Shown here: piece by piece, positions 2,406-38,226 of the stretch
How the letters are laid out: the number at the start of each line of letters is the position of its first letter
Numbering within the stretch: the stretch's first letter is position 1
Assembly: GCA_950097015.1 (NCBI GenBank)
Contig: CATNEN010000031.1
Coordinates: forward strand, 744,001 to 808,000
Direction: 5' to 3'
Source of the DNA: Macrostomum hystrix
Lineage: Eukaryota; Animalia; Platyhelminthes
Length of the DNA: 64,000 nt
The notes under the pieces: generated by a model
What the model saw: the letters and a program-made list of their open reading frames with translations, nothing else
Database searches by the model: none
What the model was told of the DNA's origin: nothing
Position numbers and translations under genes: made by a program

Positions 2406-4589
2406 ATGGCTCAGCAGCTGCTGCTAGGATCGCCAAGGCTTGAGGAAGTGCGCGAGTGCCGGCGACTGCTGCGAGTGCTGCCCCGTGCCGTGCAGTATGA
2501 CGGACCTCTGGTCGCTGAGACTGCTCAGGTGAGCATGTTGCTGATTTTAGAACGTGAGAATGAAGTGAGTGAGAGAATGGAGTGAGTGAGAGAATGGAGT
2601 GAATGAGAGAAGGGAGTGAGGGAGAGAATGGAGTGAGTGAGAGAATGGAGTGAGTGAGAGAAGGGAGTGAATGAGAGAATGGAGTGAATGATAGAATGGA
2701 GTGAATGATAGAATGGAGTGAGTGAGAGAAGGGAGTGAGGGAGAGAATGGAGTGAGTGAGAGAATGGAGTGAGTGAGAGAAGGGAGTGAGTGAGAGAAGG
2801 GAGTGAATGAGAGAATGGAGTGAATGATAGAATGGAGTGAGTGAGAGAAGGGAGTGAGGGAGAGAATGGAGTGAGTGAGAGAAGGGAGTGAGTGAGAGAA
2901 TGGAGTGAGTGAGAGAAGGGAGTGAGTGAGAGAATGGAGTGAGTGAGAGAATGGAGTGAGTGAGAGAATGGAGTGAGTGAGAGAATGGAGTGAATGAGAG
3001 AATGGAGTGAATGATAGAATGGAGTGAGTGAGAGAAGGGAGTGAGGGAGAGAATGGAGTGAGTGAGAGAAGGGAGTGAGTGAGAGAATGGAGTGAGTGAG
3101 AGAATGGATTGAGTGAGAGAAGGGAATGAACTAGAGAATTCTAGTAGTTGATTTTTATGGTTAGTTCAGCAGGGCATGATCTGGTACTGCCAGTAGGTTG
3201 CTATGAATTTGATGTCGAATGTTTTTGACCACCCTTGCATATAATCGCTAATAATATTTTTTGCAAATCTTCATTTTTAGGTGAATGTCGTGCAACAGGC
3301 GGCAGCGTACATCGACCAGCTGCACAGGGAGCTGCTGGCTCGGTTCTTTCCATGTAAGCGCAACTGAAACTGGTTCAGAAAGTCAGACGTACATTTCATA
3401 GGACCCTCTCTAGCAGATTGCTACGGCTACACGGAGAGTTGCAGACTTTTAAAGGCTGAATAATCTTACCTCCCGAAAGATCTGATCCTTCGACAGTCTC
3501 ACCCTAACAAACTGGTCCTTCGACAGTCTCACCCCCAACAAACTGGTCCTTCGACAGTCTCACCCCCAACAAACTGGTCCTTCGACAGTCTCACCCCCAA
3601 CAAACTGGTCCTTCGACAGTCTCACCCCCAACAAACTGGTCCTTCGACAGTCTCACCCCCAACAAACTGGTCCTTCGACAGTCTCACCCCCAACAAACTG
3701 GTCCTTCGACAGTCTCACCCCCAACAAACTGGTCCTTCGACAGTCTCACCCCCAACAAACTGGTCCTTCGACAGTCTCACCCCCAACAAACTGGTCCTTC
3801 GACAGTCTCACCCCCAACAAACTGATCCTTCGACAGTCTCACCCCCAACAAACTGGTCCGTCGACAGTCTCACCCCCAACAAACTAGTCCTTCGACAGTC
3901 TCACCCCCAACAAACTGGTCCTTCGACAGTCTCACCCCCAACAAACTGATCCTTCGACAGTCTCACCCCCAACAAACTGGTCCTTCGACAGTCTCACCCC
4001 CAACAAACTGATCCTTCGACAGTCTCACCCCCAACAAACTGGTCCGTCGACAGTCTCACCCCCAACAAACTGGTCCTTCGACAGTCTCATTCCCAACAAA
4101 CTCGAATCTAACTGGTCCATCGACAAATTCATCCCAAAAAACGGAACCTTCGCCAATCTCAGACCACACCAGGTTCTGGAATCAGACTAGATCTAACTAC
4201 TATCTAACAGGTAGCTGATTGAAGATGTAATTAGTCATACTGGTAGATAATATGACATGTAGTTCAACAGGTGTGATGTCTAACAGTTCACTGACTCGAG
4301 ACTGTAACAGCACTCGAATGTGACCCTGATGCTGAATCGAATTCAGACCACGTTAATGCAAATATTCCCGCATCCCAATCTGCCAGTTGCCGGTGACACG
4401 CGTGGAGTCCAGACTATCGTGGAGAGCCTACTGCCGGCAGATTTCTTTGCAGCCGCCCTCCAGCAGTCACCGTCGAGCCGATGCCGCGACGCCACAGCGC
4501 GGCGCAGTCGAAAACGCGCAGGCCGCAGTCAGCGGAAGCCGAAGCCAATGCGGACAGCTCGGCCGATGAGGCCAACGAAGCGGATCTGA
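2406..4589 (+). CDS. 3-exon gene for a 132-aa helix-loop-helix protein apparently lacking a basic region (ID/emc-like); exons 2406-2528, 3281-3353, 4387-4589
   Basis: GT-AG sites with matching phases (0, then 1); spliced product MAQQLLLGSPRLEEVRECRRLLRVLPRAVQYDGPLVAETAQVNVVQQAAAYIDQLHRELLARFFP... resembles HLH helix1-loop-helix2 (cf. ID KVEILQHVIDYIxDLQ); total 399 nt. Confidence 0.65.
2560..3130. repeat. 17-bp purine-rich minisatellite (GAGTGAGTGAGAGAATG) in HLH intron 1
   Basis: Direct tandem repeats. Confidence 0.95.
3486..4100. repeat. 31-bp minisatellite (TCCTTCGACAGTCTCACCCCCAACAAACTGG) in HLH intron 2
   Basis: About 20 near-identical direct repeats. Confidence 0.96.
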
Positions 4590-5025
4590 TAGAGGAAACT
4601 GGAAGCTTTCAAATCCCTCAGAATGAAAATTTCCCATGAAAACTTTCCCAGCAGATAGAGCAGTCCATTTCCTGTTTATCAATCTGAAATGCACGGTGTC
4701 CCGCTTGCTAGCGTCTGTCTTAGAAATTGATGTTAGATAAGGCATCATTCTTATGCTTCTCTGTATATAGCTGGCCTCTTCTGCATCTCTCTGATGTAAA
4801 CACAATGTGCCATGTTGCAACTGGTCGAATGCCAATGTACACTGTACAGTGTTGCTTTCCTGTACATTCCTGCCGTTTGATTAATTAAACACAAAACTCT
4901 GCAGAAAGATCGCGTAATAAGACAAAGCCGATTCGTTTACTTTATCGTGTGCTTCTACTTGGAAAAAATGCGGCTGCATTTATTAGAATGCGGGCTTCGC
5001 AGCGCTTTGATGCCGATGTAAATAT

Positions 5026-6101
5026 TTACTGCGATTGTGTTTAGTGATACGCGATATAGAAGTCCAATATATACTGCGATTGTGTTTAGTGATACGCGAT
5101 ATAGAATTCCAATATATACTGCGATTGTGTTTAGTGATACGCGATATAGAAGTCCAATATATACTGCGATTGTGTTTAGTGATACGCGATATAGAAGTCC
5201 AATATATACTGCGATTGTGTTTAGTGATACGCGATATAGAAGTCCAATATATACTGCGATTGTGTTTAGTGATACGCGATATAGAAGTCCAATATATACT
5301 GCGATTGTGTTTAGTGATACGCGATATAGAATTCCAATATATACTGCGATTGTGTTTAGTGATACGCGATATAGAAGTCCAATATATACTGCGATTGTGT
5401 TTAGTGATACGCGATATAGAAGTCCAATATATACTGCGATTGTGTTTAGTGATACGCGATATAGAAGTCCAATATATACTGCGATTGTGTTTAGTGAAAC
5501 GCGATATAGAAGTCCAATATATACTGCGATTGTGTTTAGTGATACGCGATATAGAAGTCCAATATATACTGCGATTGTGTTTAGTGATACGCGATATAGA
5601 AGTCCAATATATACTGCGATTGTGTTTAGTGAAACGCGATATAGAAGTCCAATATATACTGCGATTGTGTTTAGTGATACGCGATATAGAAGTCCAATAT
5701 ATACTGCGATTGTGTTTAGTGAAACGCGATATAGAAGTCCAATATATACTGCGATTGTGTTTAGTGAAACGCGATATAGAAGTCCAATATATACTGCGAT
5801 TGTGTTTAGTGAAACGCGATATAGAAGTCCAATATATACTGCGATTGTGTTTAGTGATACGCGATATAGAAGTCCAATATATACTGCGATTGTGTTTAGT
5901 GATACGCGATATAGAATTCCAATATATACTGCGATTGTGTTTAGTGATACGCGATATAGAAGTCCAATATATACTGCGATTGTGTTTAGTGATACGCGAT
6001 ATAGAATTCCAATATATACTGCGATTGTGTTTAGTGATACGCGATATAGAAGTCCAATATATACTGCGATTGTGTTTAGTGAAACGCGATATAGAAGTCC
6101 A
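5026..6101. repeat. 45-bp minisatellite (ATATACTGCGATTGTGTTTAGTGATACGCGATATAGAAGTCCAAT), ~24 copies
   Basis: Direct repeats; accounts for the 365- and 374-aa repetitive ORFs. Confidence 0.97.
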
Positions 6102-6567
6102 ACTCGAGAAACCTATTTTTCAAGTTTTTTAAAAACTAATGAAATTTATCGAAAGCGTTAGTGCTACAAAATGCTTTCTTTAAGTTCTAATGCGAGCCTT
6201 TATTGTGAGATCAAATTGGTTAATATTATATGTTCATTTTATAAAAAACACTACAATATGGATTCACAAGCGCACAGGAGTACAAAGTGTTGCTAAGCCT
6301 GTCATTTAACATTGTGCATTGTGAGATCATTGCAGAAAAGTTATAATAGACTAATAAGGAATATCTAACATTGCATGTTTAATAAAAATACATAAATACT
6401 TTATTGCAGAAATACTACGGTTAATAACAGGTTTTCTGTTTTGCTTGTTTTAGTGATTTGTACTTTGTTACTAATTTGAGTTTTGAAATTGAGTTTATTT
6501 GAATAGTTTTAAGTCAACACAACCTGTGCGTGGGGTCGCTTCCTGACAAACCCAAACGTCTTTCTGA

Positions 6568-9500
6568 TCAGCTGGGCTCGACATCCTCGCTATCAAGGTG
6601 ACCAACAATGGTCAGGTAGATGGTCTCAGTGCTGTCCGCCAGGTCGGTCTCAGTCAGCTGGCCCTTGACTACAGTTGCGTACTCAACTGGCGGGGTGCTC
6701 TGCAAGTGAACGGTTCAGCGACTCGGTTGAAAAAACTTTTTTACAATGTTATAAGCATCTATTGAACAGGGTCACGTGTTCCTAGGTCCTTGAGAGGTCA
6801 ACGTGTTTGCCCGTGGCAAGGTCCCTGAGCTCGACTCCGCAGTGAGGCGCAGCCGTCTTGTCGTGCAATATGCACCCCTTCGGGCCAACCTCCGAGGCAC
6901 AGTGAAATTGTACACTGCCTAACGATGAGAATTCAGGGCAGATGTACACTGCCTGCATACAGTATGTGTGTGTGTGCTCGGGAGTCAGTGGAATAGGCAG
7001 AATTGCCTGTCGCTTGCTGAGGTCAACTGTCCACCAAATGATGCGCCTAATAGCTCGTAATATAGTTTTCGGTGAAAATCAGCTGCCAGTTTTTGCCAAC
7101 GAAACTAGAGTGCTCTGTCTTTTAAACTACGGTACTAAAAGTCCATCTTCTAGTCGTTGCCTAGCCGGGGTAGTTGCCTAGCTGGGGTTGTAGCCTAGCT
7201 GGGGTTGTAGACTAGCCGGGGTTGTAGCCTAGCTGGGGTTGTAGCCTAGCTGGGGTTGTAGCCTAGCTGGGGTTGTAGCCTAGCTGGGGTTGTAGCCTAG
7301 CTGGGGTTGTAGCCTAGCTGGGGTTGTAGACTAGCCGGGGTTGTAGCCTAGCTGGGGTTGTAGCCTAGCTGGGGTTGTAGCCTAGCTGGGGTTGTAGCCT
7401 AGCTGGGGTTGTAGCCTAGCTGGGGTTGTAGACTAGCCGGGGTTGTAGCCTAGCTGGGGTTGTAGCCTAGCTGGGGTTGTAGCCTAGCTGGGGTTGTAGC
7501 CTAGCTGGGGTTGTAGCCTAGCTGGGGTTGTAGCCTAGCTGGGGTTGTAGCCTAGCTGGGGTTGTAGCCTAGCTGGGGTTGTAGCCTAGCTGGGGTTGTA
7601 GCCTAGCTGGGGTTGTAGCCTAGCTGGGGTTGTAGCCTAGCTGGGGTTGTAGCCTGCTGGGGTTGTAGCCTAGCTGGGGTTGTAGCCTAGCTGGGGTTGT
7701 AGCCTAGCTGGGGTTGTAGCCTAGCTGGGGTTGTAGCCTAGCTGGGGTTGTAGCCTAGCTGGGGTTGTAGACTAGCTGGGGTTGTAGCCTAGCTGGGGTT
7801 GTAGCCTAGCTGGGGTTGTAGCCTAGCTGGGGTTGTAGACTAGCCGGGGTTGTAGCCTAGCCGGGGATGTAGCCTAGCTGGGGTTGTTGCCTAGCTGGGG
7901 TTGTAGCCTAGCCGGGGTTGTTGCCTAGCTGGGGTTGTAGCCTAGCTGGGGTTGTAGCCTAGCCGGGGTCGTTGCCTAGCTGGGGTTGTAGCCTAGCTGG
8001 GGTTGTAGCCTAGCTGGGGTTGTAGCCTAGCTGGGGTCGTAGCCTAGCTGGGGTTGTAGCCTAGCTGGGGTTGTAGCCTAGCTGGGGTTGTAGCCTAGCT
8101 GGGGTTGTAGCCTAGCTGGGGTTGTAGCCTAGCTGGGGTTGTAGCCTAGCCGGGGTTGTAGCCTAGCCGGGGTTGTAGACTAGCTGGGGTTGTAGCCTAG
8201 CCGGGGTTGTAGCCTAGCCGGGGTTGTAGCCTAGCTGGGGTTGTAGCCTTGCCGGGGTTGTAGCCTAGTATTTAGAGAATCGGACTTAAATGTCGGCGGT
8301 TCGATGCCCCGACTCAACTGGAACAATTAGTGTCCTTTAGCAAAGCACTTAACTCTGCATTGCTTCAGTTCACCCAGCTGTTAAATGGGTACCAGCATTA
8401 GCTGGGATAATTGAGGGTGGTTGTGGCGTCCCACCAGCCCATCGACTGTACAGCCGTACGCAGCCTTCAGATGCGCCACGCAATAGCTGAGGCTGTGACA
8501 TCGGCTGCATCTGGCCCAATTGGGACAGGTGGAGTCAATTATTATTATTGCTTTATGCACCCAAAGTGAAGTAGCCGTAATGACTCACTTTATGTAAGAA
8601 CACATGCAAATAATCGGAGCCACACGAGTATAATAATAATAATAAATTTCTGTTTGTTTGCCAAACAGAGGGTTAATAGGCTACCGTGAATAAGTTATGT
8701 GTCCGCATGAACTCGGTCTCCGCGTCCGGCGAACCACTTCGCTTTCGAGTCATCGGACTTGGCGTTTCAATCCGACCCGCGCCGCTGCCGTCCGAATTGC
8801 TGCCTGCAACTTCGCGGCCGCCAATAAATCGGAACCAGAGCCGCAGGAATATACAATTGACCGACACCAGGACGACACCAAAGACCAGCCCCAGTGCCAG
8901 CAGAGATCCGAATGAGGCGAAGAATGCTCCACCCGCTGGGCTCCCGGATGAGTGCGCGGCTTCAAATTCAGGTTCAAGTACTATCGGTAATTTATTGCAA
9001 ATCTACTAGCCTGAATTATCCAAGTGCTTTACAGTATATGTACTTCAAATTTAAAAAAACATTGCAACAAAATATAACAATACTTTACGAAGACTCACAT
9101 GGTGAGGCATATCTAGAAGTAGTAGCCACTGATGATTTGACTTGAAATATGTAGTCATTGTCATCGCGGAATTCCGCAAACTCCTGTGTTACTGAGCAGG
9201 TAATGTTGGCCGTCAGAGAACGCTTGTCGATTTCAACCTGAACCGAGTGCGTGCCGAAGCGGAATCCATCCGAGTTCAATGAACTATTCGAGACCACCGG
9301 CTGAAAAAACGATTTAAAAATGGCATCTATTGGCGATGCATTTTGAAACGCAAAACAGGTTCAAAGGGGTTTGTCGTTTTGAGCTCACGTATCGAATTCC
9401 AGAGTCGGTGAGCAGCGAGCAGTTCACCCGCGGGCTCGGGTTTCCATCGGTCACATTGACGTGAACAAGCACCGTGTTTCCTGACATTGTTGATCCTTTC

Positions 9501-12500
9501 AGATCCACCTGGGACCGGACTGTGACGCAGAAATAAAAAGGAATCAACATGTGCTTTTATGTTGTAATTAAGTAATAATGAAGTTGTTATGAAGTACGAG
9601 TAATTATTACTTCTTGTTCTACGAGAACTCTCACAATCAAACAACTCAATGAAGGCTCAATATGACCGGACTGTCAGGCATAACAAAAAGCCAAGTCTCA
9701 CTTGACCATCATTTGGTAGCCCATAAGATATAATAGTAGTCTGTAGAACATCAAAGCTTCGAGGAAATCGCCTAATTATCTATGATACATATAATAGACT
9801 CAACTTCTCAGCTTAGAAAGCTCCCAATTTCTCAGCTTACCAACGATATTTGGCACTTGGAAAACCTTTGCGTCTGAACTCGCTCCTTGAAGCTTTGATG
9901 TGCACGATATAGATTTTCCGTTTGTATCTGCATTGACGCCGAGATTAAACTCAGAGACGAGGCTCATTTTGTGGCTGCTGGTTGAGCCGTTCAGCAGCTT
10001 CTGTCGATTAAACGATCAATTTTTTTATTACGCTTTTTGCTGATTTGGATTTTTCATTTTCTATGACTTTATAAATCAAGATCGAACGTTGATGATCGCA
10101 ATTCTTCAGGTACTAGTATTTAGAATGTTTTCATGAAGCTACAAATACAAAAGGAGAGGAGTTAAAAATGCAGTCACTCACTTCACATGTGGGAAGCAGA
10201 GCAAGTCCTACAGTATTATTCTTGTTTTGCTTCCCATCCGTCACCAGCCTGCAGGTGTGGCTTGGGATACTAGGACGCGCATCGTTTGTGATGAAGCTGA
10301 ACCGAAACTCTGTTCCTACGTTGCGTGGCTCGATGTATTCTCCACTTGACTTAGCTGAAACAGGTACAAAAAGTGTCGCTAAAGTAAATGAACGAGAAAA
10401 TTAAATAGTGTCGTAATGAAAAAATTTCTTGGCTGTTCAGCTCTGAGTCGCTTGCAGTCTGCAGTCAAAGAAACAGTGACGCACCAATGAAGCCATTGAC
10501 GAATGGTTTGGACCACAGAATATAGAAGCCGTGCTTCTATCACATTGACGAATGGTTTGGACACTCAATATTTACCATAGACAGCGTGCAATAATGCTCC
10601 AGTTAGCGTGCAATAGTACAACATATTAAAGAAGCTACATTGTGTATTCTGTGGTTTGGACACTAGCTGAGACAAAATAATGCCAGGATTTACCATAGAC
10701 AGCGTGAAATAATGCTCGCATGCATTTTGTTGACAAAAATACAATTATCCAACCGTCAGCGTGCAGATAATGTTGAATTATTGCACGCTAACTGGAGCAT
10801 TATTGCACGCTGTCTATGGTAAGTATTGAGTGTCCAAACTATTCGTCAATGTGATAGAAGCACGGCTTTCTCATGCAGCTACGCCATAGATACGAGTGCG
10901 CGAAGCGCACTCAAAAGCCGTGCGCTATCTCTCCATTGCTTGTCTATAGCACGGTTTCGTAGGACATAGTCTATGTTAGTCTGGTAATAAAACTATAAAA
11001 CCTTCATTTCATACCATAGACATAGGTGTATCTACTATATACATACACTTTTTTCTGAAAAATTAATTTTAGCTGGCCATGTTGGGTCGCCGCCCCCACA
11101 TCCCGGAACGGCACTGAACACTACCATAGACAAAACGATAAGAAATCAAGAAAAACTTAAGGACGGCATTGTTGCACGGACAGAAAAACTATGTATCTAT
11201 AGTTACATCATTGTACACTTTTGGAGGGGCTTTTTCCCAGCCACCAATGAAGCCTGATTGTTGCACGCCTTTACTGTCTATGTCCCGAACCCCAGCGGCT
11301 CGTCTCGCTGTCTTACAGCCTTCCCCAAACTAAGTTCTCTTGCTGCCCTAAGTCAGGCGGTCTACTTTTGGACCATAGACATTTCGGGCGTGCACCAATC
11401 GACAAAATAATCGATTGCTGCACGCCCCGCGAGACCGCTGGCTATATCCGCTCCCAGGGACAACTAAAACCCTCGGGACGCGAAACGAGCCAATTCATGG
11501 CAAAAAATCTGAGGGGCTCGCTTAAAAGTATTGTTCTATGGCTTTTTCAAGTCTTCTCTGCTATCAGGCATTAACGGTTAGATTAAATATAAAGCGAGTA
11601 AAGTAAATATAGTAAAGCGAGGCAATGTCAAGGCACCGAAATCGGTGTATGCAGTTTAAATGCACGAATCAGAAAGTTGGGTGAGACAAAAATTCGAACA
11701 GACAGGTCTCCATCTTTATCTAACGTAAACAAGTAAACGTCTTCGTTCAGAATAGCTGTGTTCAGTGCATGTCGAGATACGACATCCGAATTTTTCACCT
11801 CAGCTCGAAAACTTTCCCATGCCGGCAAAAAATCAAGCAGCTGAAAAGCGTCCATCTCATCGATGTCGCCGCACCTCGCGTCAGAAAGAACACCGCGCTT
11901 TTCGGCCTGTCGGTCCTGGTCTAAAAAAAGAGTAAAAATAAAAGTAAGATAATTGTGAGCTAAAAAATCGATATAGACGATAAGTGTTGAGCAATCTTTA
12001 AGTTTCGTACCTTGGTTCTGAACAAAACACGAGCTAGGAACTCCATTAAAAACAGAAGGAGGATTAATTGGCCTTTCGGTAGAGTTTTTCTTGACCATTG
12101 GAGCATCGCTTGGCCAATGCTTTACGCACACGCCCATATTGTCAGTCACTCTCTAAAATTATACATTTTGGGTTTCAAGTTGTTTGGACGAGACTGGCAT
12201 GCAGAATTGAAGCGGAATTATGCAGCAGTAATGACAGCAAATGATCTGGTTTCTTACCTGGAGAATATTTGGCAGCGCCTTTCTCCATCGCTCTCGCTCC
12301 TGTGGATCTCTGGGAAACGCAAATATCCGTGTTCGAACGGCTTCAGAGTTGTAATTTGACGAGCACGGAAATACGCTGCACTTTCTTGGCATTTCATCAA
12401 GTGAATAAAAAATGCTTCTCTTGGTATAGTTCAGCTTAGCTTCACTGCTGGCCGCAGCTAAAGCAATTTTAATTTGCTTGATAGCAGAGAAGACTCGAAA

Positions 12501-14034
12501 AAGCCATAGAACAATACTTTTAAGCGAGCCCCTCAGATTTTTTGCCATGAATTGGCTCGTTTCGCGTCCCGAGGGTTTTAGTTGTCCCTGATCCGCTCCG
12601 TGAGACTGATTGTTGCACGCCCCAACTGTCTGTGGTCCAAAAGTATACAATGCCAGTGATAAACGGCTACGCGCCCTCGGTTAAAAACATTGCAGCACTC
12701 ATAGCCGTTTATTACTATATCAATGCTTTCCATAGCTGTTTCAAATTCGCCACCAGAGCACTCAAGCTGCAGTTCTAGGTGCAAACCTGAACACCGAAAC
12801 TAGCGATCAATTGAGTTTTTGGAGTTAATTGATCAATTAGATTTACCAATTAACCAATTCAAATTTGCAATTGAATAGTTTCAGCTTGAGATTCTCATTC
12901 TAAAATGCTATCACCAGATTAAAAGTGGTCACAACAGCTCATAAAATCTAGCAGCCTAAGGGGCTCACCATTTCTAAAGCATCTGATGCAGTTCCATTCA
13001 AATATGTGATGTGATAGGCAAGCTATTCCTTATCATGGCAAGCTATTCGCTGCAACATGGCTTGAAGGACACAGCTTCATTGAGTATTTGTCACCGCTCT
13101 TTATAACACTAATGAGATTTCCTTCACCAGACAATCTGCGACCTCTGTGATGCTGATTACAGTCAAGAAGTTAAGAAGTTAGTTTTCATAGGCACAGAGT
13201 GGTCACAAATACTGTAAGCTGCAAATTCGTTGCAAATACATACCTACTTCCACTTGGAGCGCTATAAAGTTTAAGAACTTATCGTGAATATTTTCTACAT
13301 TTCTTCTTAGCAGGATGAACTTGGTCATCTGAAATGAAGTGAAGTGACGGTTCAGAAGAGCTCATTCGTGTGTTTTTGCGGACTACAAGCAGACCAACCT
13401 TTGTGCAGTCAGAGTACCCGCAAATCACTCTTTGCATAATCGGGCTTCTCTCACTTGTGGTGACACCGCACTGGGTGAGTGAGCTGTCGGAGGTGTTTGA
13501 GACAGTTGCTATGCAACGGCCGCCAGTCGAGTTCAGCCCAGCAGGCATTTCGTGGCTCAGGGAAATTTCGATGCCCTCAGTTGCAGCTACAAGAAATCAC
13601 AGTAACACAGCCATATATGAGATAATATTACTAACTTTGCAACAGTAGATGCACTGCTCAGTCTCTGAGAACTCACTCGTCTCAGACCTGCCGTACACAG
13701 TGACCGAAAGCACACGCATGGGGCGAGTGAGTTGCATCAGCAGCCATTGGTAGCCGAATCCGTTTGTAGCTCCGAGTGCAGCTCGATCGAGGAAGCACCT
13801 TGATCCATGATCGGAAGACTGCCAGGGCTGAGCCACTTCTTTTTTCGTGATTTTGAATCGCCTAGAATCAACACTTTCATCTTCTGCACTTGCCCGTGTG
13901 TCTGAAAGGAACAAAATTAGTACAAGGGATAGATACAAATTCCAGATGCTTTTATTTGAAGGAATGGAAAACTTACTCAATTCAAATGCGATGAGAGCAG
14001 CGAAGACGGCGCACAACACCTTAAGCAGAGCCAT
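6568..14034 (-). CDS. Receptor gene A: signal peptide, lectin-like (F5/8C-like) domain, >=3 Ig-like domains, TM, ITIM+ITSM tail
   Basis: SP exon 14034-13977 (MALLKVLCAVFAALIAFEL); exon 13901-13677 (...GYQWLLMQLTRPMRVLSVTVYG); Ig half-exons near 10370-10220, 10000-9850, 9520-9385, 9300-9100; TM exon 8959-8685 (GAFFASFGSLLALGLVFGVVLVSVNCIFL); terminal exon 6699-6568 STPPVEYATVVKG...TETIYLTIVGHLD...*. Phases match at the SP, lectin, TM and terminal exons; exons at 13.2-12.7 kb and ~9.7 kb unresolved. Confidence 0.75.
6799..7025. repeat. Copy of a ~300-400 bp dispersed intronic repeat (others at ~19430-19760, 30420-30760 inverted, 41375-41697, 53530-53735, 59575-59897, partial ~56270-56315)
   Basis: Shared core GTACACTGCCTGACGATGAGAAAGTCAGGGCAGATGTAC...GAATTGCCTC, usually with GGTCCCTGAGCTCGA. 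Confidence 0.85.
7154..8268. repeat. 17-bp G-rich minisatellite (GCTGGGGTTGTAGCCTA), ~65 copies, fused to a SINE 5' end
   Basis: Direct repeats; the last unit runs into the SINE head GGTTGTAGCCTAGT. Confidence 0.97.
8256..8550 (+). mobile_element. tRNA-derived SINE (degenerate head)
   Basis: A-box-like TAGCCTAGT, B-box-like GGTTCGATGCC, central block GCAAAGCACTTAACTCTG...CACCCAGCTGTTAAATGGGTACC, (ATT)n tail; homologous to 25778-26075. Confidence 0.85.
10497..11290. mobile_element. Cluster of nested non-autonomous MITE-like elements with (TA)CCATAGAC termini
   Basis: Long inverted repeat ~10524-10620 vs ~10778-10870; repeated CCATAGAC/GTCTATGG ends, mostly flanked by TA. Confidence 0.7.
11363..12645. 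mobile_element. MITE with ~40-bp imperfect TIRs (TACTTTTGGACCATAGAC...GGGCGTGCA) hosting the THAP element
   Basis: Inverted similarity between 11363-11401 and ~12606-12645. Confidence 0.7.
11455..12590 (-). mobile_element. Internally deleted DNA transposon with ~95-bp TIRs, 9-bp TSD (ATCCGCTCC) and a THAP zinc-finger remnant
   Basis: TIRs begin CAGGGACAACTAAAACCCTCGGGACGCG; TSD at 11446-11454 and 12591-12599; minus-strand MPRKCSVFPCSSNY...IFAFPRDPQERERWRKAL...ICCHY matches the THAP signature; no catalytic domain seen. Confidence 0.8.
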
Positions 14035-15850: not shown

Positions 15851-17250
15851 TTTGGATTTGGACTGAAGCTTCTGGGCTCGGGCGGCAACTGAAATATTTC
15901 CCAGTTCAGAATGTGCAACGTCAATGCACTAATTAAGGAACGACAAAGACAATGTTCGAGCGTAAGACTTACACTGGGCTCTGAAAATGAGCTCATATTC
16001 CGGAGTCGAGCACTTGTGAACGTCTTTTCAATTGAAGCATACGTTTCCATCTTAAATGCCGATTTATAAACTTCAATGCACTCTTGCGCTAAAAGGCTAG
16101 ATCCAAAAATATCTGTATATCTTATTATCTATCTGAAAGATAACACAAGGTAAAAAAGAATAATTAGAACCGGCTCACGGGCAAGTAGGAACCGTCTTCA
16201 GCTAGATAAGTGTCAACAGTACTGCTTTCATTTAGTCCTGTCTAAAATTTGCGAATTATAATCAAAGCCTTTGAATCCTAGATGTTAATTTTTGCATATT
16301 AATTCGCAGTTCAAATGCCAATAAAATCTTACCATTAAAATCCTCCCAGTTCTGTCGGGAACTATCTAAAAATAATATTTTGTCATGAATGTTTTGGTAG
16401 GCAAAACTACCAACTGCTTGAATTGCAGCCCATCACAAGAAGTACCATGTACCATGATTCACATGTATTATGTTATATTTTCCATAATGTATATGTTGTT
16501 CTGCATACCATGATTTACATGTACCATGTTCTATTTACCATGATATAAATGTACTAGGCTCTATGTACATAATGTAAATGTACATGTTCTACATATCATG
16601 ATGTACATGTACATGCAAATCGTGATGATTGCTACTTATCAGTAGACAAGCAGGTTAGGAAACAAGTGAACTCAAGCAAAGTGGCTTGAGATTGGCACCA
16701 ACACGCACTGAGCTACAGGACATAACTATTGCACGTCAGGGATGCAAAATTTTTCACCCATTATCATGTCCACAGTCCAGTTAAAACACTTCCATCAAAC
16801 TGATTTGAATCGCTCGCCTAGGGGCTTGCCAGTCCCTAAGAGCTTACATAGGCCTCGTTGTCAGCTGTTACAGAACTCCGATCAGCAGTGCTAGGCCTTT
16901 CTCGTAAGGCACAGTCTGAAATGCAGGCATATGAAACAGAGCCACATAAAATGGTCCAGGGCGACTACTAGATGCACAATGTTGGCATACCGTTGTGTTT
17001 TTCTCAAATATTCCAGCTGTCAAAGTCTCCTCATCGTACTCAGTCTGAAGTGCCAAAAAGCTTGCGATAATGGTTCTGATCAACCGAAACTGAAATCTAG
17101 AAGCACAGCTTTGAGTGACTTACGTTTGGATCCCTATTAGCAGTCCCATGCGCCTGCGGCAGGGTGTTTTCCTCCTCGTATACCGTCTGAAATGTTACAA
17201 TGCTTTTTAGCATATACAACTCAAGCATTGAGTCTGGCATCGTTGTAGGG

Positions 17251-17764
17251 CAGGGGTAGGCAAACTTATTTGCTGGCGGGCCAAAGAGAGAGCCCAAAAG
17301 ACGACAGCGGGCCGCATTGACTGTATAAATATGAGATAGGGGAGAGATTAGACACGGGAGAGATTAGACACGGGAGAGATTAGACACAGGAGAGATTAGA
17401 CACGGGAGAGATTAGACACGGGAGAAATTAGACACGGGAGAGATTAGACACGGGAGAGATTAGACACAGGAGAGATTAGACACGGGAGAGATTAGACACG
17501 GGAGAGATTAGACACGGGAGAGATTAGACACGGGAGAAATTAGACACGGGAGAGATTAGACACGGGAGAGATTAGACACGAGTGAGATTAGACACGGGAG
17601 AAATTAGACACGGGAGAGATTAGACACGGGAGAGATTAGATACAGGAGAGATGAGACGCGAGAGAGATGAAACAGGACACTGTAGATGTCAGAAGGGGCA
17701 ACGGGCCGATTTGGGAGCTTCGAGGGCCGCATCTGGCCCGCGGGCCGGAGTTTGCCGACCCCTG
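17251..17764. mobile_element. hAT (Charlie-like) MITE carrying an internal 16-bp minisatellite (TTAGACACGGGAGAGA, ~17340-17670)
   Basis: TIRs CAGGGGTAGGCAAACT / AGTTTGCCGACCCCTG; 8-bp TSD TTGTAGGG at 17243-17250 and 17765-17772; GGGCCGC subterminal motifs. Confidence 0.92.
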
Positions 17765-18610
17765 TTGTAGGGGGTGGTAGAGGATTTACAAAAGTTATAA
17801 TTTGAACCCCTGAGAAAAAAATTACATTAGGATCTCTCGCTGCGGGCTGCACTAGATTCTCCTCCTCGTAGTAGATAGTCTGAAAAGTGAAGAGCTACGT
17901 GTTTGGCAGCCATAAAGGCAGTCTATGTTTGTTCATGTAATTCAGTACTAACGTTGGGATCTCTCTCGGGATAAAGCTGAACTCCCGCCGACTGATCCTT
18001 AGCTTCCTGCTCAGTAGCAGCTGAAGAACCAGTCCGCTTCAGCAGCCCGATTGCGACGACGACTATGACAACACTGGTGACGGTCACAGCAATGATGGCA
18101 ATAATCAGCCTATCAGTACTAATACCAACAGGGACAGGGGAGTGGGTGTTTTGAATATCCCGAATGCCTCCGTTTGATCCTTTCAGAATGTAATCTGGAT
18201 GATGAACTAGCTTTGAAAAATGCTTCTTGATATATTCCTCAAAGCAAGAAATATTCACCGACTGTTCATGCTTAGGCAGTTGAACAGGGAACGAGTGCAG
18301 GCCTTTAGAAAGCGCGCTGCGTCTCAGCAGTGCCTGCAAATGAAACTAGCCAAATACCATTTCAGAATAAGAAAATGTCTTGCAAAAAGCTTAATGTTGT
18401 ATTAGCGAGTGGAATTTTCGGCAAATACTAACGTTCTGCTGAGCTCCAGATCCCACGAGCACTGAGCAGCTCAAATTCGGTGCGGGATTACCATTTGTCA
18501 CATTGATGCTCACGTTCATTGTTCCATCAGTTTGGAAATGTCCCGAAATGCTCACAGTCGATTCGACTAAAATGAAAGCAGGTCTAATTAGGCGACATTT
18601 AGCAGCGAAT

Positions 18611-18832: not shown

Positions 18833-20176
18833 CCCAAAACCTCGTGCGCCTTTCCAGCTCCTAATTAATAATTACGAGAAGCAGCAAACTTACAGCGAAC
18901 TGAAATTCGCATCTGAAAGTGCTCATCCAGATCAGGGAAGCCAGCTTGTGCAACGCGACAAGACACGAATTCGTTGTTCATCTCTCTCTTGGATGCCAAG
19001 CTGAAGTTGGTAACAATCAGCGACTCGGTTTCGGATGCATTAGCAACCAGTTTTGTGTTAGATGTGCTGAGCCAACAGCTATGCTTGGGCTTTGGCTTTC
19101 CACCAACTGAGCTCACTGAGACAGTTAGCAACCAGTTTTGTGTTGGATGTGCTGAGCCAACAGCTATGCTTGGGCTTTGGCTTTCCACCAACTGAGCTCA
19201 CTGAGACAGTTAGCAACTCGCCCTCCTTCACGGCTAGCGATGACACCACAGTGCTGGGACCCTCTTACAGAAAACAGAGAGCGTTTTATTCGCCCAGGAG
19301 TGCAGGCTATCGTCCTGATAGAGCTGGCATGCCAGCTGCCGGTTATTGTACTCTCTGCGCGAGGTCAGCGCAAACATCAATCCACATGAGGATTCTGTTA
19401 CCTGACAAAAATATTTTTTTGGTGTGACTTCATGCGGCGAGGCCACATTCACTTGGGATGCAGCCCCGAAGAGAAGGCTTGAGGGCATGGCTTCGGCTTG
19501 TAATTTAGACTTATGGCGGGCCAACCCCCCAAGACCCAGAGAGGGTGACGACGAGAAATTCAGGGCAGATGTACACACCTGTGTGAGTGTGTACCTGCGT
19601 TACGCGTTTGAATGCGTGTGAGAGCAGTGGTCAGCGGAATGGACAGAATTGCCTCCCCGTTGGTTGCCAGTGTAGCTAAATAACTTGAATGCGTGTGAGA
19701 GCAGTGGTCAGCGGAATGGACAGAATTGCCTCCCCGTTGGTTGCCAGTGTAGCTAAATAACTAATCAGTGCCCACTACTCCCCGAATATCATATAGAGAG
19801 CTCCATACACCTACATTGTCCGCGGACACTCGAGAGTTGCCAAGCCAGCATGTGTAATTGCTAACTGCGGGTCTTCCTCCAGTCGATATGAGTGTCACTT
19901 CGATGCTTTTGCCTTCAATCACGCCACCTGGCGGACTGATGATCATGTAGCTCCACGCGACGTCTGGAAATTGAATGGCTTTTGGTTGCTGAGCAGCGTT
20001 TAATTCAAAATAAACCAGTAAGACAGACTTGTACCTACAATTAACAGTGATATTGATGACTGTGCTGCTGCTGTACGTCTTAGAATAAAGAAAAAGGAGG
20101 CGTGTTTGCACGGCCGTGCAGTTCAGCCTCGTGTCGCGCCAATCCGGTATGAATCTCAGCTTTGTCGAGTACGTAT

Positions 20177-23100
20177 ACCCCTGTATATCTTAGGGTGTTA
20201 TATCCCACCGGAAAATTCTAAATACTACAAAGAAGATATATGGGAGGAGATTAAATATCTCATCCAGCTCTTCTCAAGAGAGGGCTCCGTATTAACAGTA
20301 GGTGACTTCAATGCACGAACTGGCACATTACAGCCCAGCACTAGGGATAAGTTTCCCAGACAGAATCAGGACTCTGAGAAAAACAAGCATGGATTAAGAC
20401 TGATGGAAATGTGCTCCGAGACCAAGAGCACGATTCTGAACGGAATGACTCAGGGTGACATTATGGGAAATTACACGTTTAGTAGCACACTAGGCCGAAG
20501 TACCATAGACTACGCTATTGTATCCATGGATAAAGTGGATATTATAAAAGACTTCTTTATTCATCCTCAAAGCTTTCTGTCCAGACATTGCCCGCTAACA
20601 GTCACTCTGATTTTTCCTGATCATGTCCAACCCGAACACGCAAACCAGGAAAAACATGAATCCTTCCCAATGCCTCCAAGATGGGACACTGAAACGCAGG
20701 GAAGTTACATTGAGGCATTGAATAACAAACAAAGCGAAGAAATAATTAGAAAGTTGCAATCTATCGACGCACACGATGGAAAATCCCTGGAAAATTTGTT
20801 CTCGAGCTTGACCAACCTGCTTAGAGACTCAGTGGCAGAAAGCTGCGCAAAGACAATCATTCCGAACAAGTTCTGGACAAATCGAGACGAGACACTAAGA
20901 AACTTGAGCAAATCATTAAAGTACGTGGCCAGGAAAAAAAGACGTAGACCAACTGACAGCGCGCTGGCATCAGAATATAATGGGCTAGCGAAAAAATACA
21001 AACAACAGCTCAAGAAACTTAAGCAGATGGACATAAATGACTGCATTCAGAAAATGGCGGCTAACGGAACCTCAAAGGGATTCTGGTCCGGTCTTAGAAA
21101 AGCAGAAGAGTTGCTGTTCCCCAGCAGGAGACTTAACAGACCTCAAGCCCCAATCGCTGACATCGCGGACAACCTAACCAAAGTGTTTAACGCACATCCT
21201 TCTTTGGGAACCCAGCCGCATCGCACAGATGAAGCAGTTAGTCCCGAAGATTTAATTAGCTGCGTAGATCTCGATAGAGCAGTTAAAAAGCTAAAGAGAA
21301 GAAAGGCTGCAGGAATAGATGGTATAACAAATGAGCACATTATCTACGGACAAGAGAAGCTAAAACCCGTACTTCTGAAGCTTTTTAACGCAAGCGTAAG
21401 ACTCGGCCAGACTCCTGCACAGTGGTCAAATGCCCTAATCACACCGATTTATAAAAAGGGTTCCCGTAGTGACCCCAAAAACTACAGACCCATAAGCGTG
21501 CTGCCTGCCCTGGCTCGCCTGTTTGCCTCACTTATCTATGAAAAGCTAGAAACTCATATTCGCACCCTCGACTTGCTTTCAGCCAGTCAAATAGGAAATA
21601 GAAAGGGCTACCGAACTTCAGACCACATTGCCACTCTCTTGACGTTGATCCACAACAAAAAGCGTCGCAAAAGGCCATTTCACTTAGTGTTCTTTGACTT
21701 AAAAAGCGCATTTGACATGGTCCACCATCCAACACTTTTCCAACGACTTAGGGAGTTAAAGGTCAGCCCAGAAATAATCGAAGCAATACAAAGCATGTAC
21801 TCAGGAGCTAAATTCCAACTGAAGATCTCAGATGGCCAAGCAACTAAGGCAAGGAGCATAACAAATGGAGTAAGACAAGGCTGTCCCCTATCCCCTCTAC
21901 TCTTCTCACTCTATATAGATCCTTTGAGCACAATGCTAAGGGATTCATTTCGCAGCGACACCTTCATTAAAGATGAACAAATCAACAACTTGCTATACTG
22001 CGATGATTTAGTGATCTTTGGAGAGAATCCTCGAGAGTTGCAGAAGGGCCTCGATAAAGTGTCAGAATTTTGTCAGAGCCACAAGCTAGAAATCAATATG
22101 CAAAAAACTAAGGTTATTAGCTGTTGCCCTGACCCATCAAAGACGGCTAACAAACTATTTCTGCAGGGACAACTGTTAGATAGCGTCAAAGAATGGAAAT
22201 ATCTTGGCTTTCACATCAATGCTAAAGGAACCGTGGATTCCCATGCCACAGAGATTAACAAAAAATGTGGATATCCTATTCTTCTCTTAAGGAAATTAGC
22301 CAGCCATGGGGCGGTCAGATACAACCAGCTCATGCTGTACTGCACAGCAATGATAGAAAGCATAGCTCTGTACGCCTCTGAGGCCTGGGGGGCTTTTGTC
22401 TCGTGGAACCTGGGTCCTTGGGACCGCTGTCTTTTTGAAAGAGTAAACATCAGGTGCTGTAAAGCCATACTACAAGTCAGCCAAAATACGGATGGCAACG
22501 GGGCCCGCTCGGAGTTAGGCAGATTGCCTTTATTATACAACATCCAGAAAAGAAGCATTTCGTACTGGGCCTCCATAACAAGCCGGCCGGACTCCATAAT
22601 TTCCAAGTTATTGGCGGACCAAACATACAGTGATGTTGGAATCAAAGCAAAGACCAACAATGACGTTATGCTGAACTGCAGAGGCATTAGTCCTGCAAAA
22701 GCAATTGGAAACCACAGGAAAAATTTCGTTTCTCAGTTCGATACCCATTGGAGACAAAGGACACAGAACTCAAGCAAGCTAAGTCACTTCTATTACTCCT
22801 TCAAGCAATATTATTCAGCCGAAAAATATTTACAACAAATATACAACCCGGAGTGGAGACGTACCATAGCCTCGTTTAGACTAGGAAACCATAAGCTAGC
22901 TTGCGAAACATTGCGAACTGCGAGACCGAAAATTCCGTATGTTAATAGATTATGTAGTAAGTGCAAAACAGAAGTTGAAAACGAGGTCCACTTCCTTTTT
23001 AAGTGCACTTGGAATAAATATAGCGCAGCACGTTCGAAATTTGAGACGGAAGTTTCTGGGAAAACCCCCAATTTCATATCCTTAACAGCAGAAGAAAAAT

Positions 23101-23446
23101 CTAACTACATAATGGCTCAAGACGATAGGGAAACCGCTGAAGCTTTAGCAAAATACATCATAGAAATATCTAAAATAAGGGAACAGCTGCCCTGAGACTA
23201 CGAGATCTTACTAGCATTCAACAATAGATATTTCATATTTTGTTTTATCCCTGCCGTCCCTTGTGTTTTTACTGCTCTTATTTTTAATACCTTTGCTTTC
23301 CCTTCCCAGCTCGATATTTGATTCCTACTAAACTTCGCTTTTTATGTTGCTTTTCGCTGTTCATTTAAATGTGTTGTTAAAAAAAATATAAAAAAAAAAA
23401 ATCAGCACCCATAGATGGCGTGCGCGTTTTAATAATAATAATAATA
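20177..23446 (+). mobile_element. 5'-truncated non-LTR retrotransposon: partial APE, RT, C-terminal CCHC; ORF to 23195; (TAA)n tail; 6-bp TSD ACGTAT
   Basis: VGDFNAR, TIDY and SRHCP (APE); YRPISVL, FDLKSAFD, GVRQGCPLSPLLF, YCDD (RT); CSKC...HFLFKC; TSD at 20171-20176 and 23447-23452. The first ~24 codons of ORF 20106 are antisense host exon. Clade uncertain (RTE-X/Proto2-like). Confidence 0.95.
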
Positions 23447-25565: not shown

Positions 25566-26462
25566 GGTTTACTCCCGATTCGCCAAATCCCGATTCGCCG
25601 AAATTCCTGACTCGCCGAATTCCCGATTCGCCGAAATTCCTGACTCGAATCCTGATTCGCTGAATCCTGATTCAATACATCTTACTTTATCATAAATTAA
25701 AATTAAACCACATAACCATTGCCCTCTTTGAGTGTTGGTCAAACATTGGAACTCTATTTCTATTGTATTGAAATTAAGGTTGTAGCCTAGTGGTTAGGGC
25801 GTCGGACTCACGACTTGAAGGTCGGGGGTTCGATTCCCGACTCCACTGGAACAATTTGCGTCCTTTAGCAAGACACTTAACTCTGCATTGCTTCAGTTCA
25901 CCCAGCTGTTAAATGGGTACCAGCATCAGCTGGGATAATTGAAGGTGGGTGTGGCGTCCCCCCAGTCCGTGGACTGAACAGCCGTACGCAGCCTTCAGAT
26001 GCGCCGCGCATTAGCTGCGGCTGTGCTGTCGGCTGCACATCTGACCCAATTAGGGCAGGTGTAATCAATTATTATGAATAAATAAAAAAAAAAAATTAAT
26101 AAAAATATATAAATTGAAATTAATTAAAAAAACTAACTTAAATGAAATGCAGTTTCTTAATTAATTAACTTGTAAACTTGCTTCTAAACTTTATTAACTT
26201 TCTGGAACGTACTAATTTATCAAATTTATCATTTATCCTACCTCGTAGATTGAGTGAGCAAAGAAGAACATCACACGTACTTCGGAAAAAGCAAAACTTG
26301 CTGGACATCCTTGTAGAGCCGAAAGTAAAAGTGTAATGAGGTACGGTAGCTCAGCAAAAAATGTTCTTAGGAATTTTTTCGGCAAAGAGGGAATTCGACG
26401 AATCGGGAATCGTCGAATCGGGAATCGGCGAATCGGGAATTTCGGCGAATCGGGAGTAAACC
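25566..26462. mobile_element. Non-autonomous TIR element with CCCGATTCGCCGAAATT subterminal repeats; contains a SINE
   Basis: GGTTTACTCCCGATTCGCC at the left end mirrored by GGCGAATCGGGAGTAAACC at the right. Confidence 0.8.
25778..26075 (+). mobile_element. tRNA-derived SINE, best-preserved copy
   Basis: A-box TAGCCTAGTGG, B-box GGTTCGATTCC, central block resembling the conserved metazoan SINE cores (Deu/Nin or Meta type), (ATT)n tail. Confidence 0.9.
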
Positions 26463-37327: not shown

Positions 37328-38226
37328 CCCACTCGGAGTCAGCAGAGGTGTAGTAGACGGTGGTAGCCATGTAAAATAGGATTTCGGAAATCGGGTCCTG
37401 TGCTACTCAATGCTATATTCATGATTAGAGATAGACAAACTAATAATAACAAAATCCAATAAATATACGGCCTTGCTTTTCTCATACTCTGAGCGTAAAT
37501 TTTGTGTATATTAAGTAGTTAGCACTTTTATTTAAATGCTTGAATAAATAAACAAATAAAACAACATCACAATTTTGATAAACATTTTAGCGTAAAAATA
37601 CGTTTTAGAAAATAGCTTCGCATATTATAAAATATAAGAAATTTTATTGGAATTGAAAAGTTCATCGCTTTATTAAAAGCTGCAATATCAACACTAAACA
37701 ATGTCAGTCAGTTATCACTAAGGATTCTAAAGCTTGAAATAGAATACCTTGCTGTGTAGCTCTTGACAGGAATAAACAACGAAATAATTCATCCGGATTC
37801 ATTCCAACCGAAAAGCAGGGATATGCATTAATTATTCGTGAGCATCGACAGTGGTTCAACCTGTGCTTCCCCAGGGTGCAGCTCTAAATATGGAGAAACT
37901 AAAATAGCGATAGAAACACTGGAAATTAAATCCTTATATTCAGAATATTTCACAATTTAAACACGGGATTATAAACAAAAAATTGTCTAATCATAGCGAG
38001 TCATCTAGAATAAGTTCTAGAATAAGCCATCTATGACGAACTCAACAGGAATGATAACAGTTTCCTGAACAATTCTTTGAAGTCAAGTCTTCAGCGTGAG
38101 AGCTATTAGAGCTACATTCGGTGTACTTCAGTATGCTCAGCAACTTCCAGTTGAAATAACAGAAAGTCCATGTCCGTATTTCATCCATAAACATAACTCG
38201 AATTTCTAATTTTAAAGCACTCGCCA

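Follow-up and report, generated by a model that had tools for sequence, protein, structure and literature searches.

Results

The 64,000-nucleotide window that we analyzed, a stretch of the Macrostomum hystrix genome, holds a tandem cluster of related genes, within which gene A is a multi-exon gene on the minus strand at roughly 14034-6353 (exon coordinates are given in the direction of transcription). Joined at their AG..GT borders, six exons give one open frame of 357 residues with a stop at its end only; it comprises two split Ig-like domains, a stalk, a transmembrane (TM) helix and a 96-residue tail. The two halves of Ig-like domain 1 lie at 10354-10182 (…NDARPSIPSHTCRL…, similar to gene B 19913-19842) and 10000-9841 (similar to gene C 31653-31576), and those of domain 2 at 9519-9389 (…VTDGNPSPRVNCSLL…, similar to genes B, C, D and F) and 9300-9099 (…LTANITCSV…, with AG/GT borders and a continuous frame, similar to gene B 18303-18244). 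The TM exon (8959-8685; phase 1 at its start, phase 0 at its end) encodes the stalk, the TM helix and, beyond it, the initial 53 residues of the tail (...GGAFFASFGSLLALGLVFGVVLVSVNCIFLRLWFRF...THNLFT), and is followed by GT at 8684-8683. The TM segment is hydrophobic over 27-30 residues and precedes RLWFRF, with NxS/T sites on its N-terminal side. A separate terminal exon supplies the tail's remaining 43 residues.

Three tentative 5' exons occupy 14034-13399. The first (14034-13977) encodes a candidate signal peptide, MALLKVLCAVFAALIAFEL, and the second and third (13901-13677 and 13586-13399) tentatively encode a discoidin/F5-8C-like module. The core of this module is similar to the modules of genes C and D, and Atlas features suggest F5/8 type C for the N-terminal module of gene D (score 0.91). 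As drawn, the join from the third exon to 10354 is mismatched in phase; a donor at 13395 would fit. The TM helix, the basic residues after it, the 96-residue C-terminal tail and the candidate signal peptide are features of type I topology, and the orientation that makes the tail cytoplasmic depends on the signal-peptide exon and the discoidin-like module, both of them tentative.

The half-domain exons of gene A are similar to a paralogous single-exon Ig domain that Atlas features assign to the CD80-like C2-set (score 0.97, 197 shared features). Confirmation of the Ig and lectin folds did not come from Pfam, PDB or AlphaFold: Pfam returned only noise for ten of the cluster's exons or ORFs, the gene B Ig exon and a ten-row profile found no match in the PDB, and the AlphaFold models of the gene B Ig exon with its in-window alignment (pLDDT 41) and of the gene D N-terminal module as a single sequence (pLDDT 32) were too poor for a fold search. 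One Ig alignment (A2) was discarded because its second-half exons sat on the cysteine of the first half. The cluster also contains a LINE reverse transcriptase, the best protein match of which is 60% identical (a metagenome contig), with the others at 31% or less.

The terminal coding exon (6699-6568, phase 0) consists of 43 codons plus a stop at 6570-6568 and translates as STPPVEYATVVKGQLTETDLADSTETIYLTIVGHLDSEDVEPS followed by the stop, exactly the peptide that an earlier note on this DNA had given. Its acceptor AG, at 6701-6700, is preceded by a pyrimidine-rich tract. The exon is absent from the ORF list, as that note had remarked, because it lacks a start codon and is short. The 3' untranslated region (6567-6353) has AATAAA at 6499-6494 and 6405-6400, and transcript contigs reach down to 6353-6421. 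Two tyrosine motifs lie in the exon: VEYATV (6687-6670, Tyr codon 6681-6679), which fits the ITIM consensus (S/I/V/L)xYxx(I/V/L), and TIYLTI (6624-6607, Tyr codon 6618-6616), which fits the ITSM consensus TxYxx(V/I) and is directly followed by VGHLD. The former is membrane-proximal and the latter distal within the cytoplasmic tail; 15 residues separate the hexamers. Counted along the exon, the tyrosines stand at residues 7 and 28, a distance of 21, which falls within the 20-30 or so expected of PD-1/Siglec-type inhibitory receptors. Both consensus fits, the ITIM-then-ITSM order and the spacing of 21 residues, all proposed previously, hold on the translation. An ITAM (YxxL/I, 6-12 residues, YxxL/I) was rejected, since 17 residues lie between YATV and YLTI and position +3 of the first motif is V.

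The splice join is documented by transcript-type contigs from three public runs (X2, X3 and X4) of M. hystrix, the species of the window. The contigs, 556 nt long in X2, 1456 nt in X3 and 470 nt in X4, align from 6353, 6421 and 6407, respectively, to 6700 with 0-1 mismatches; the matches stop at the acceptor, and depth over 6706-6792 is zero in all three runs. The X2 and X4 contigs run on past the acceptor with 30 letters, GTGAATAAGTTATGTGTCCGCATGAACTCG, that match the window once and without mismatch, at 8686-8715, the last bases of the TM exon. The comparison covered 6300-7158, beside a tandem array, and the join shows in the letters at the loose ends. Because the contigs continue with letters unique to the end of the TM exon, mature RNA joins this exon to the terminal one at 8685|6699. 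The contigs and the exon frame together bear out the earlier proposal of an exact, phase 0 join to the TM exon, and both motifs are present in expressed transcripts (spliced contigs, three runs, join 8685 to 6699).

The intron so removed, the last of gene A (8684-6700, GT at 8684-8683 and AG at 6701-6700), contains 65 copies of a 17-bp unit in tandem (7159-8268) and, at 8297-8510, a dispersed repeat. Read-through of the TM exon past this GT would end the protein at TVAY*. The earlier note had named such an ending in all transcripts as an outcome that would refute its observation; this is not the case, since spliced forms occur in three runs. A read-through isoform that lacks the motif module may coexist with the spliced one, because contigs lose rare isoforms. 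The transcript-backed exon corrects gene models that otherwise end the protein at TVAY*.

A counterpart of the module is found in the paralog gene D (38460-38320, minus strand, …GDVYVQVVKPEPGASSQFPPAELSESSLTLYTDIVGHIDTD; tblastn E = 2e-4 against the gene A module), in one open frame with the gene D TM segment (38227-38880). The three runs contain 0.35 of the words of 38150-38900. The tails of A and D can be aligned over the motif module alone (E = 2e-4), so that by sequence comparison the module is a conserved island within otherwise unalignable tails. Their alignment, A1, has 14 invariant positions, which include Y7, V10, V11, K12, T26, Y28, I31, V32, G33, H34 and D36, and the shared pattern is Y..VVK ... 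T.Y..IVGH.D. The second motif of gene D, TLYTDI, is an ITSM, and the gene D tyrosines are 27 apart. The first, DVYVQV, keeps its tyrosine and has D at -2, which is not an ITIM. The feature conserved in the family is thus YxxVVK plus TxYxxIVGH.D, and canonical ITIM status is not conserved even within the cluster: the 'canonical ITIM' label of the earlier note suits gene A and does not extend to its paralog. A stretch of gene C that looks alike, VVVVVVGHLNS (27698-27666), lies within a hydrophobic run and was dismissed as a chance resemblance.

A profile of A1 retrieved no relative from 1.84 billion protein representatives, a search that missed even the window's own protein, the proteins of this species being apparently absent from the library; tail conservation is therefore shown with one paralog. 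The top of two matches (P0001) proved artefactual, arising from a fish-type Ig protein with repeats, and the second (P0002) had E 6.6e-4 and a length of 6407 aa.

Short degenerate motifs are frequent, and the consensus fits could be chance matches, devoid of specific function, in a fast-evolving disordered tail. Among random 64-kb windows of the same dinucleotide content, 30% hold at least one ITIM-then-ITSM pair (mean 0.36) when any frame is allowed and the motifs lie 10-40 residues apart with no stop, so that the pair is unremarkable when position is ignored. It was, moreover, picked out by a reader scanning many genes, and the absence of relatives beyond the window among the 1.84 billion representatives is in keeping with chance. 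Within the real gene A tail, however, residue shuffles of the 96 residues give a pair probability of 2.6e-4, the module is the only stretch over which the tails of A and D align, neither tyrosine varies between them, and in gene A the module is retained as a terminal exon that is expressed. We consider chance a very unlikely explanation.

Discussion

By analogy with PD-1, we give about an even chance (roughly 0.5) to the reading that the gene A tail recruits a SHP-2/Corkscrew-type phosphatase via both phosphotyrosines and so dampens an activating signal. Ligand engagement would lead a Src-family kinase to phosphorylate both tyrosines; the doubly phosphorylated tail would bind the tandem SH2 domains of the phosphatase in the bidentate manner of PD-1, for which the model is that the ITSM recruits via the C-SH2 and the ITIM opens the N-SH2; and the receptor would then damp a nearby activating tyrosine-kinase signal. 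The resemblance of the motifs, on which the earlier note's suggestion of SHP-1/SHP-2-type recruitment also rests, makes SH2-domain phosphatase binding plausible.

In PD-1 (PDCD1), full SHP2 activation requires both motifs on one chain, and their tyrosines, Y223 and Y248, are 25 residues apart (PMC7078208, PMC6994217). The spacing of 21 in gene A leaves a linker long enough for bidentate tandem-SH2 binding (PMC7078208, PMC6994217). Both proteins are single-pass and, tentatively for gene A, type I, with a proximal ITIM and a distal ITSM on one chain, and the string EYAT[VI] that gene A has in its first motif recurs locally in PD-1, whose motifs are VDYGEL (ITIM, Y223) and TEYATI (ITSM, Y248). 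The ectodomain of PD-1 is one V domain, whereas gene A has two C2-like Ig domains and, tentatively, a discoidin-like module, and the gene A motifs sit in a separate terminal exon. Several observations count against the phosphatase reading: the first motif of gene D is not an ITIM, the VGH.D conserved after the second motif in A and D lies outside every SH2 consensus, both gene A motifs also match the generic YxxPhi sorting signal, the profile of the tails retrieved no relative from 1.84 billion representatives, and Pfam, PDB and AlphaFold gave no confirmation of the Ig fold.

YxxPhi signals are recognized by AP-2 mu2, and YATV and YLTI might accordingly direct endocytosis or lysosomal delivery through AP-2 or other clathrin adaptors, with no phosphotyrosine signaling. 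The gene A motifs and YVQV and YTDI of gene D all fit Yxx(bulky hydrophobic), a fit that comes trivially and does not separate the readings. A sorting signal leaves unexplained why the second motif keeps T at -2, why VVK and VGH.D are conserved beside the motifs, and why two motifs are maintained 21-27 residues apart, and we regard this role as quite unlikely.

CD33-related Siglecs and receptors of the PECAM-1 type have a lectin-plus-Ig ectodomain, occur in tandem clusters, and carry a proximal ITIM with a distal ITIM-like motif or ITSM. Gene A shares with them the order of the motifs, the logic of the ectodomain, and membership of a multigene tandem cluster whose members differ in their tails. 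Siglecs differ in their V-set sialic-acid-binding domain, the candidate lectin module of gene A being F5/8C-like. No sequence homology between gene A and PD-1 or Siglecs was detected, so the likeness is at the motif level, and no activating partner with a charged TM segment was seen in this cluster.

Inhibition is one of several outcomes that such tyrosines could have. ITSMs, known from SLAM-family receptors, are switch motifs by definition, and the gene A tyrosines could dock other SH2 proteins (a SAP/EAT-2-like adaptor, a Src-family kinase or Csk, SHIP, or Crk/Nck/Grb2-type adaptors), which would make the tail a switch or an activating scaffold instead of a phosphatase-recruiting brake. The first motif conserved in the family, YxxVVK with D/E before the tyrosine, fits such docking, and Atlas features of the gene D TM segment and tail are nearest to the tyrosine-phosphorylated single-pass adaptors SCIMP, LIME1, GAPT and vaccinia A36R, at a recognition of 1666, below the reliability mark of 2300. 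In these proteins, too, a single TM helix leads into a disordered tail along which tyrosine motifs are spaced; the proteins differ in having almost no ectodomain, and the match in language-model features is weak. DVYVQV of gene D also fits the core-2 motif, [A/D]VYxxV, of Botryllus schlosseri FcoR, partners of which are linked to activating receptors (PMC12582321). Against docking of this sort, both gene A motifs follow inhibitory consensuses in the order and spacing of bidentate SHP binding (PMC6994217). We judge it unlikely.

Receptors of the gene A kind are already known in other invertebrates. The FcoR genes of B. schlosseri form a lineage-restricted, rapidly diversifying Ig-superfamily cluster, as the genes here may do, with canonical ITIMs in their tails beside further tyrosine cores such as [A/D]VYxxV, and with motif content altered by exon choice or intron retention, which is comparable to the possible TVAY* read-through of gene A (PMC12582321). 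FcoR proteins differ in combining Ig-like with Sushi domains and in being paired with Fester-family genes, neither of which was seen here, and no conserved module of the ITSM type is described for them (PMC12582321). The exons scanned by Pfam gave no Sushi match, and gene A has no sequence similarity to FcoR that would place it in that family; every gene seen in the cluster belongs to a single lectin-plus-Ig type, and the likeness to FcoR is confined to the motif level (DVYVQV of gene D).

The phosphatase reading of the gene A tail has a counterpart at the level of the cluster, which we offer as a doubtful extension. The cluster might be a lineage-restricted, fast-evolving set of lectin-plus-Ig receptors and an independently evolved counterpart of paired inhibitory/activating clusters such as KIR/LILR, the Siglecs and Botryllus FF/FcoR, and a candidate recognition system, for self/non-self or pathogens, with a convergent SHP-recruiting device. 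The module-bearing genes A and D would then stand beside B and F, which have quite different, cassette-built tyrosine tails, and the cluster would have been remodeled by LINE insertion and segmental duplication.

The exact, transcript-supported exon and its peptide are now at hand for binding or chimeric-receptor work. The host belongs to a poorly sampled animal lineage, in which even transposons are without a close match in public protein sets. If the tail recruits an SH2-domain phosphatase, bidentate ITIM-plus-ITSM inhibition would be in use by a receptor family without detectable relatives. This, if so, would be a further, independent instance of what has been argued from Botryllus: that signaling through conserved tyrosine motifs lets new recognition receptors arise fast.

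The terminal exon of gene A

Gene A, a minus-strand, multi-exon receptor gene (roughly 14034-6353) in a tandem cluster of related genes, carries an expressed tail with ITIM- and ITSM-type motifs in proximal-distal order. Translated on the minus strand, 6699-6568 reads STPPVEYATVVKGQLTETDLADSTETIYLTIVGHLDSEDVEPS and then a stop; the acceptor is an AG at 6701-6700, with a pyrimidine-rich tract before it. VEYATV (6687-6670, minus strand), the proximal motif, fits the ITIM consensus (S/I/V/L)xYxx(I/V/L), and TIYLTI (6624-6607, minus strand), the distal one, fits the ITSM consensus TxYxx(V/I). The hexamers are separated by 15 residues, and the tyrosines, exon residues 7 and 28, lie 21 apart. Being short and lacking a start codon, the exon does not appear in a plain ORF list. 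Its sequence, both consensus fits and the tyrosine spacing agree with an earlier note on this DNA.

In its true frame, the transmembrane (TM) exon (8959-8685) encodes a stalk, the hydrophobic segment GGAFFASFGSLLALGLVFGVVLVSVNCIFL, RLWFRF and 47 further residues, the last being THNLFT. It ends in phase 0 with a donor GT at 8684-8683; read-through of this donor gives TVAY and a stop. A search of public sequencing runs with 6300-7150 placed four of them (X1-X4) on 6300-7158, beside a 17-bp x 65 array (7159-8268). Assembled contigs from three runs of the same species, X2 (556 nt), X3 (1456 nt) and X4 (470 nt), match 6353-6700, 6421-6700 and 6407-6700, respectively, with 0-1 mismatches, and all three runs have zero depth on the intron side of the acceptor (6706-6792). 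The X2 and X4 contigs extend beyond 6700 with GTGAATAAGTTATGTGTCCGCATGAACTCG, whose single match in the window (8686-8715, 0 mismatches) is the reverse complement of the TM exon's last 30 bases but one. Since the same base stands at 6700 and 8685 and the borders are GT-AG, the joint is 8685|6699, exactly the phase-0 join that had been proposed; with spliced contigs present in X2-X4, the TM exon does not end at TVAY* in all transcripts. X2, X3 and X4 have no RNA label. We read them as transcript assemblies because the exon is covered, the adjacent intron skipped and the spliced form carried, and because runs of this type hold a 0.35 share of the words of 38150-38900, versus 0.6-0.97 of a comparable stretch in DNA-labelled runs of the same species. 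The observation of an ITIM/ITSM exon is confirmed and strengthened by this transcript evidence. As assembled contigs lose rare variants, a minor read-through (TVAY*) isoform may accompany the spliced form.

Separate contigs of opposite orientation in X1, X3 and X4 cover 6300 to ~6400 (6300-6418) and continue past the stretch, so gene A may have a longer 3' UTR, or a second transcript may lie directly against it. X1, labelled as another organism, shows 0 mismatches over 108 nt within 6300-6418.

Exon structure and extracellular domains

Six minus-strand exons of gene A (10354-10182, 10000-9841, 9519-9389, 9300-9099, the TM exon 8959-8685 and, with an AG border and the terminal stop, 6699-6568), all AG/GT-bordered, make a single 357-residue frame whose only stop is terminal. 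The ectodomain has two repeats, each divided by a phase-0 intron and flanked as a whole by phase 1 on both sides; the first half bears the signature G-N-P-x-P-x-x-x-C and the second half the second cysteine (e.g., ANITCSV). Beyond the terminal exon, the X3 contig has another 1176 nt on the upstream side, which suffices for the five upstream exons (941 nt) and ~235 nt more.

The 5' part, on the same strand, is tentative, because the join 13399 to 10354 as drawn has a phase mismatch; the phase would agree with a weaker donor at 13395. It comprises a candidate signal-peptide exon (MALLKVLCAVFAALIAFEL, 14034-13977) and candidate 5' exons at 13901-13677 and 13586-13399, whose core GYQWLLMQLTRPMRVLSVTVYGRS is common to modules of genes C and D of the cluster. 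Type I orientation, and hence cytoplasmic placement of the tail, rests on that signal-peptide exon and is equally tentative. The long intron between these 5' exons and 10354 holds two ORFs of 173 and 163 residues (11628-12650, minus strand) with a C..C...FAFP signature, which by eye look like THAP-type zinc-finger transposon remnants.

Pfam recognized none of ten cluster exons or ORFs, PDB sequences searched with a paralogous single-exon repeat and a ten-row profile gave no match, and AlphaFold without a deep alignment returned unusable models (pLDDT 32 and 41). Language-model features, the sole positive evidence on domain identity, place the single-exon repeat of cluster member gene B beside CD80-like C2-set Ig clusters (score 0.97, 197 shared features, recognition above the reliability mark) and the N-terminal module of gene D beside F5/8 type C (discoidin) clusters (score 0.91, recognition just under the mark). 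From these neighbors, the gene A ectodomain is probably a discoidin-like module followed by two C2-like Ig domains.

Chance and constraint

Blind to position, the motif pair is not beyond chance: when sequences were randomized at the dinucleotide composition of the window, 30% contained an ITIM followed by an ITSM at least once in one frame or another, and the real DNA contains exactly one such pair. Once it is taken into account that an expressed single-pass protein has the exon's 43 residues at the end of its cytoplasmic tail, the pair is beyond chance, because shuffles of the 96-residue tail produce one with a probability of 2.6e-4. That the motif fits arose by chance we consider very unlikely.

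A tblastn search of the whole window with the gene A tail found one other place, 38433-38320 in the paralogue gene D (E = 2e-4). The alignment is invariant at Y7, V10, V11, K12, Q14, L20, S23, T26, Y28, I31, V32, G33, H34 and D36, forming two islands, Y-x-x-V-V-K and T-x-Y-x-x-I-V-G-H-x-D, joined by a linker of variable length and sequence; outside this module the tails do not align at all. Judged from this alignment, the pattern is that expected for short linear motifs under constraint. In gene D the second motif, TLYTDI, is an ITSM, and the first, DVYVQV, is not an ITIM because it has D at -2; it fits the 'core-2 [A/D]VYxxV' of Botryllus FcoR (PMC12582321). The gene D hexamers are separated by 21 residues, and its module shares one open frame with its TM segment. 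Gene D appears at least partly expressed, since the RNA-type runs hold 0.35 of the words of 38150-38900.

The tail search of the whole window found no copy of the module in gene C, and in genes B and F the tails differ from it. Those tails (16870-17960, 55180-55510) contain repeated short coding pieces ending ...RDPN, then GTGAGT; the 'DPNVST' recurring in ORF listings is this exon end read into the conserved donor site. Some pieces have tyrosines, such as QLYPERDPN and TIYYEEEN.

Repeats and duplications

The last intron of gene A is mostly filled by ~65 copies of the 17-bp unit GCCTAGCTGGGGTTGTA (7159-8268), and the window is unusually rich in minisatellites, with units of 26 bp (4-900), 17 bp (2556-3129), 31 bp (3482-4102), 45 bp (5021-6102), 16 bp (17340-17668) and 33 bp (48952-49585). 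The same intron holds two dispersed repeats. One, of ~210 bp (8297-8510, and again at 25835-26038, ~80% alike at the translated level), may be a SINE; the other (6817-7008) has copies near 41460-41585, 59660-59785 and 53613-53672, and RNA-type contigs contain many related copies that are 85-95% alike (word depth up to ~600).

A LINE at 20106-23195 has a 1029-residue open frame with reverse transcriptase, and its relatives carry RVT_1 and endonuclease domains. Its start (20106) coincides with the end of a gene B Ig-like exon ORF (19761-20111), and close to the window end there is a second, partial copy (62169-63131). The closest public relative, on a metagenome contig, is 60% identical. A gene B Ig-like exon contains a tandem duplication of an 85-bp unit (19040-19217, 2.1 copies, 98% alike) that shifts the reading frame. 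A segmental duplication (39900-43300 and 57850-61500) carried Ig-like exons of gene D and a mariner-like transposase copy into gene F; the transposase ORFs (41847-42787 and 60047-60987) are nearly identical.

Proposed signaling and relation to known receptors

In PD-1, ITIM Y223 and ITSM Y248 (PMC7078208) act together: the ITSM recruits through C-SH2 and the ITIM displaces N-SH2, and activation is complete only when the two motifs sit on the same chain, joined by a linker of ~40 angstroms (PMC6994217). By analogy, both gene A tail tyrosines would become phosphorylated, and an SHP-2/Corkscrew-type phosphatase would bind the tail bidentately through its tandem SH2 domains, a reading to which we give a probability of about 0.5. 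With 15 (A) and 21 (D) residues between hexamers, both linkers are long enough. The tyrosines might instead dock other SH2 proteins in a switch or activating function, which we regard as unlikely; the TM and tail of gene D fall nearest single-pass tyrosine-phosphorylated adaptors by language-model features, a hint of low recognition value. Quite unlikely, too, is that the motifs are plain YxxPhi sorting signals. The earlier note's interpretation of the tail, which likens the motif order to that of PD-1 and Siglecs, is partly supported.

Gene A resembles PD-1, CD33-type Siglecs and PECAM-1 in its topology and in the grammar of its motifs; the likeness is not one of ancestry. When 1.84 billion protein representatives were searched with a profile of the A and D tails, no true relative emerged, and even the window's own protein was missing; because of this, and because the LINE has no relative above 60% identity, M. 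hystrix and its kin seem hardly present in public protein sets. Among invertebrates, Ig-superfamily receptors with ITIMs are already known, the closest published parallel being Botryllus FcoR, with canonical ITIMs, other tyrosine cores and splicing-based motif swapping (PMC12582321). The traits of gene A's own are its predicted discoidin-like head, its split Ig exons and its conserved C-terminal ITSM-VGH.D module.
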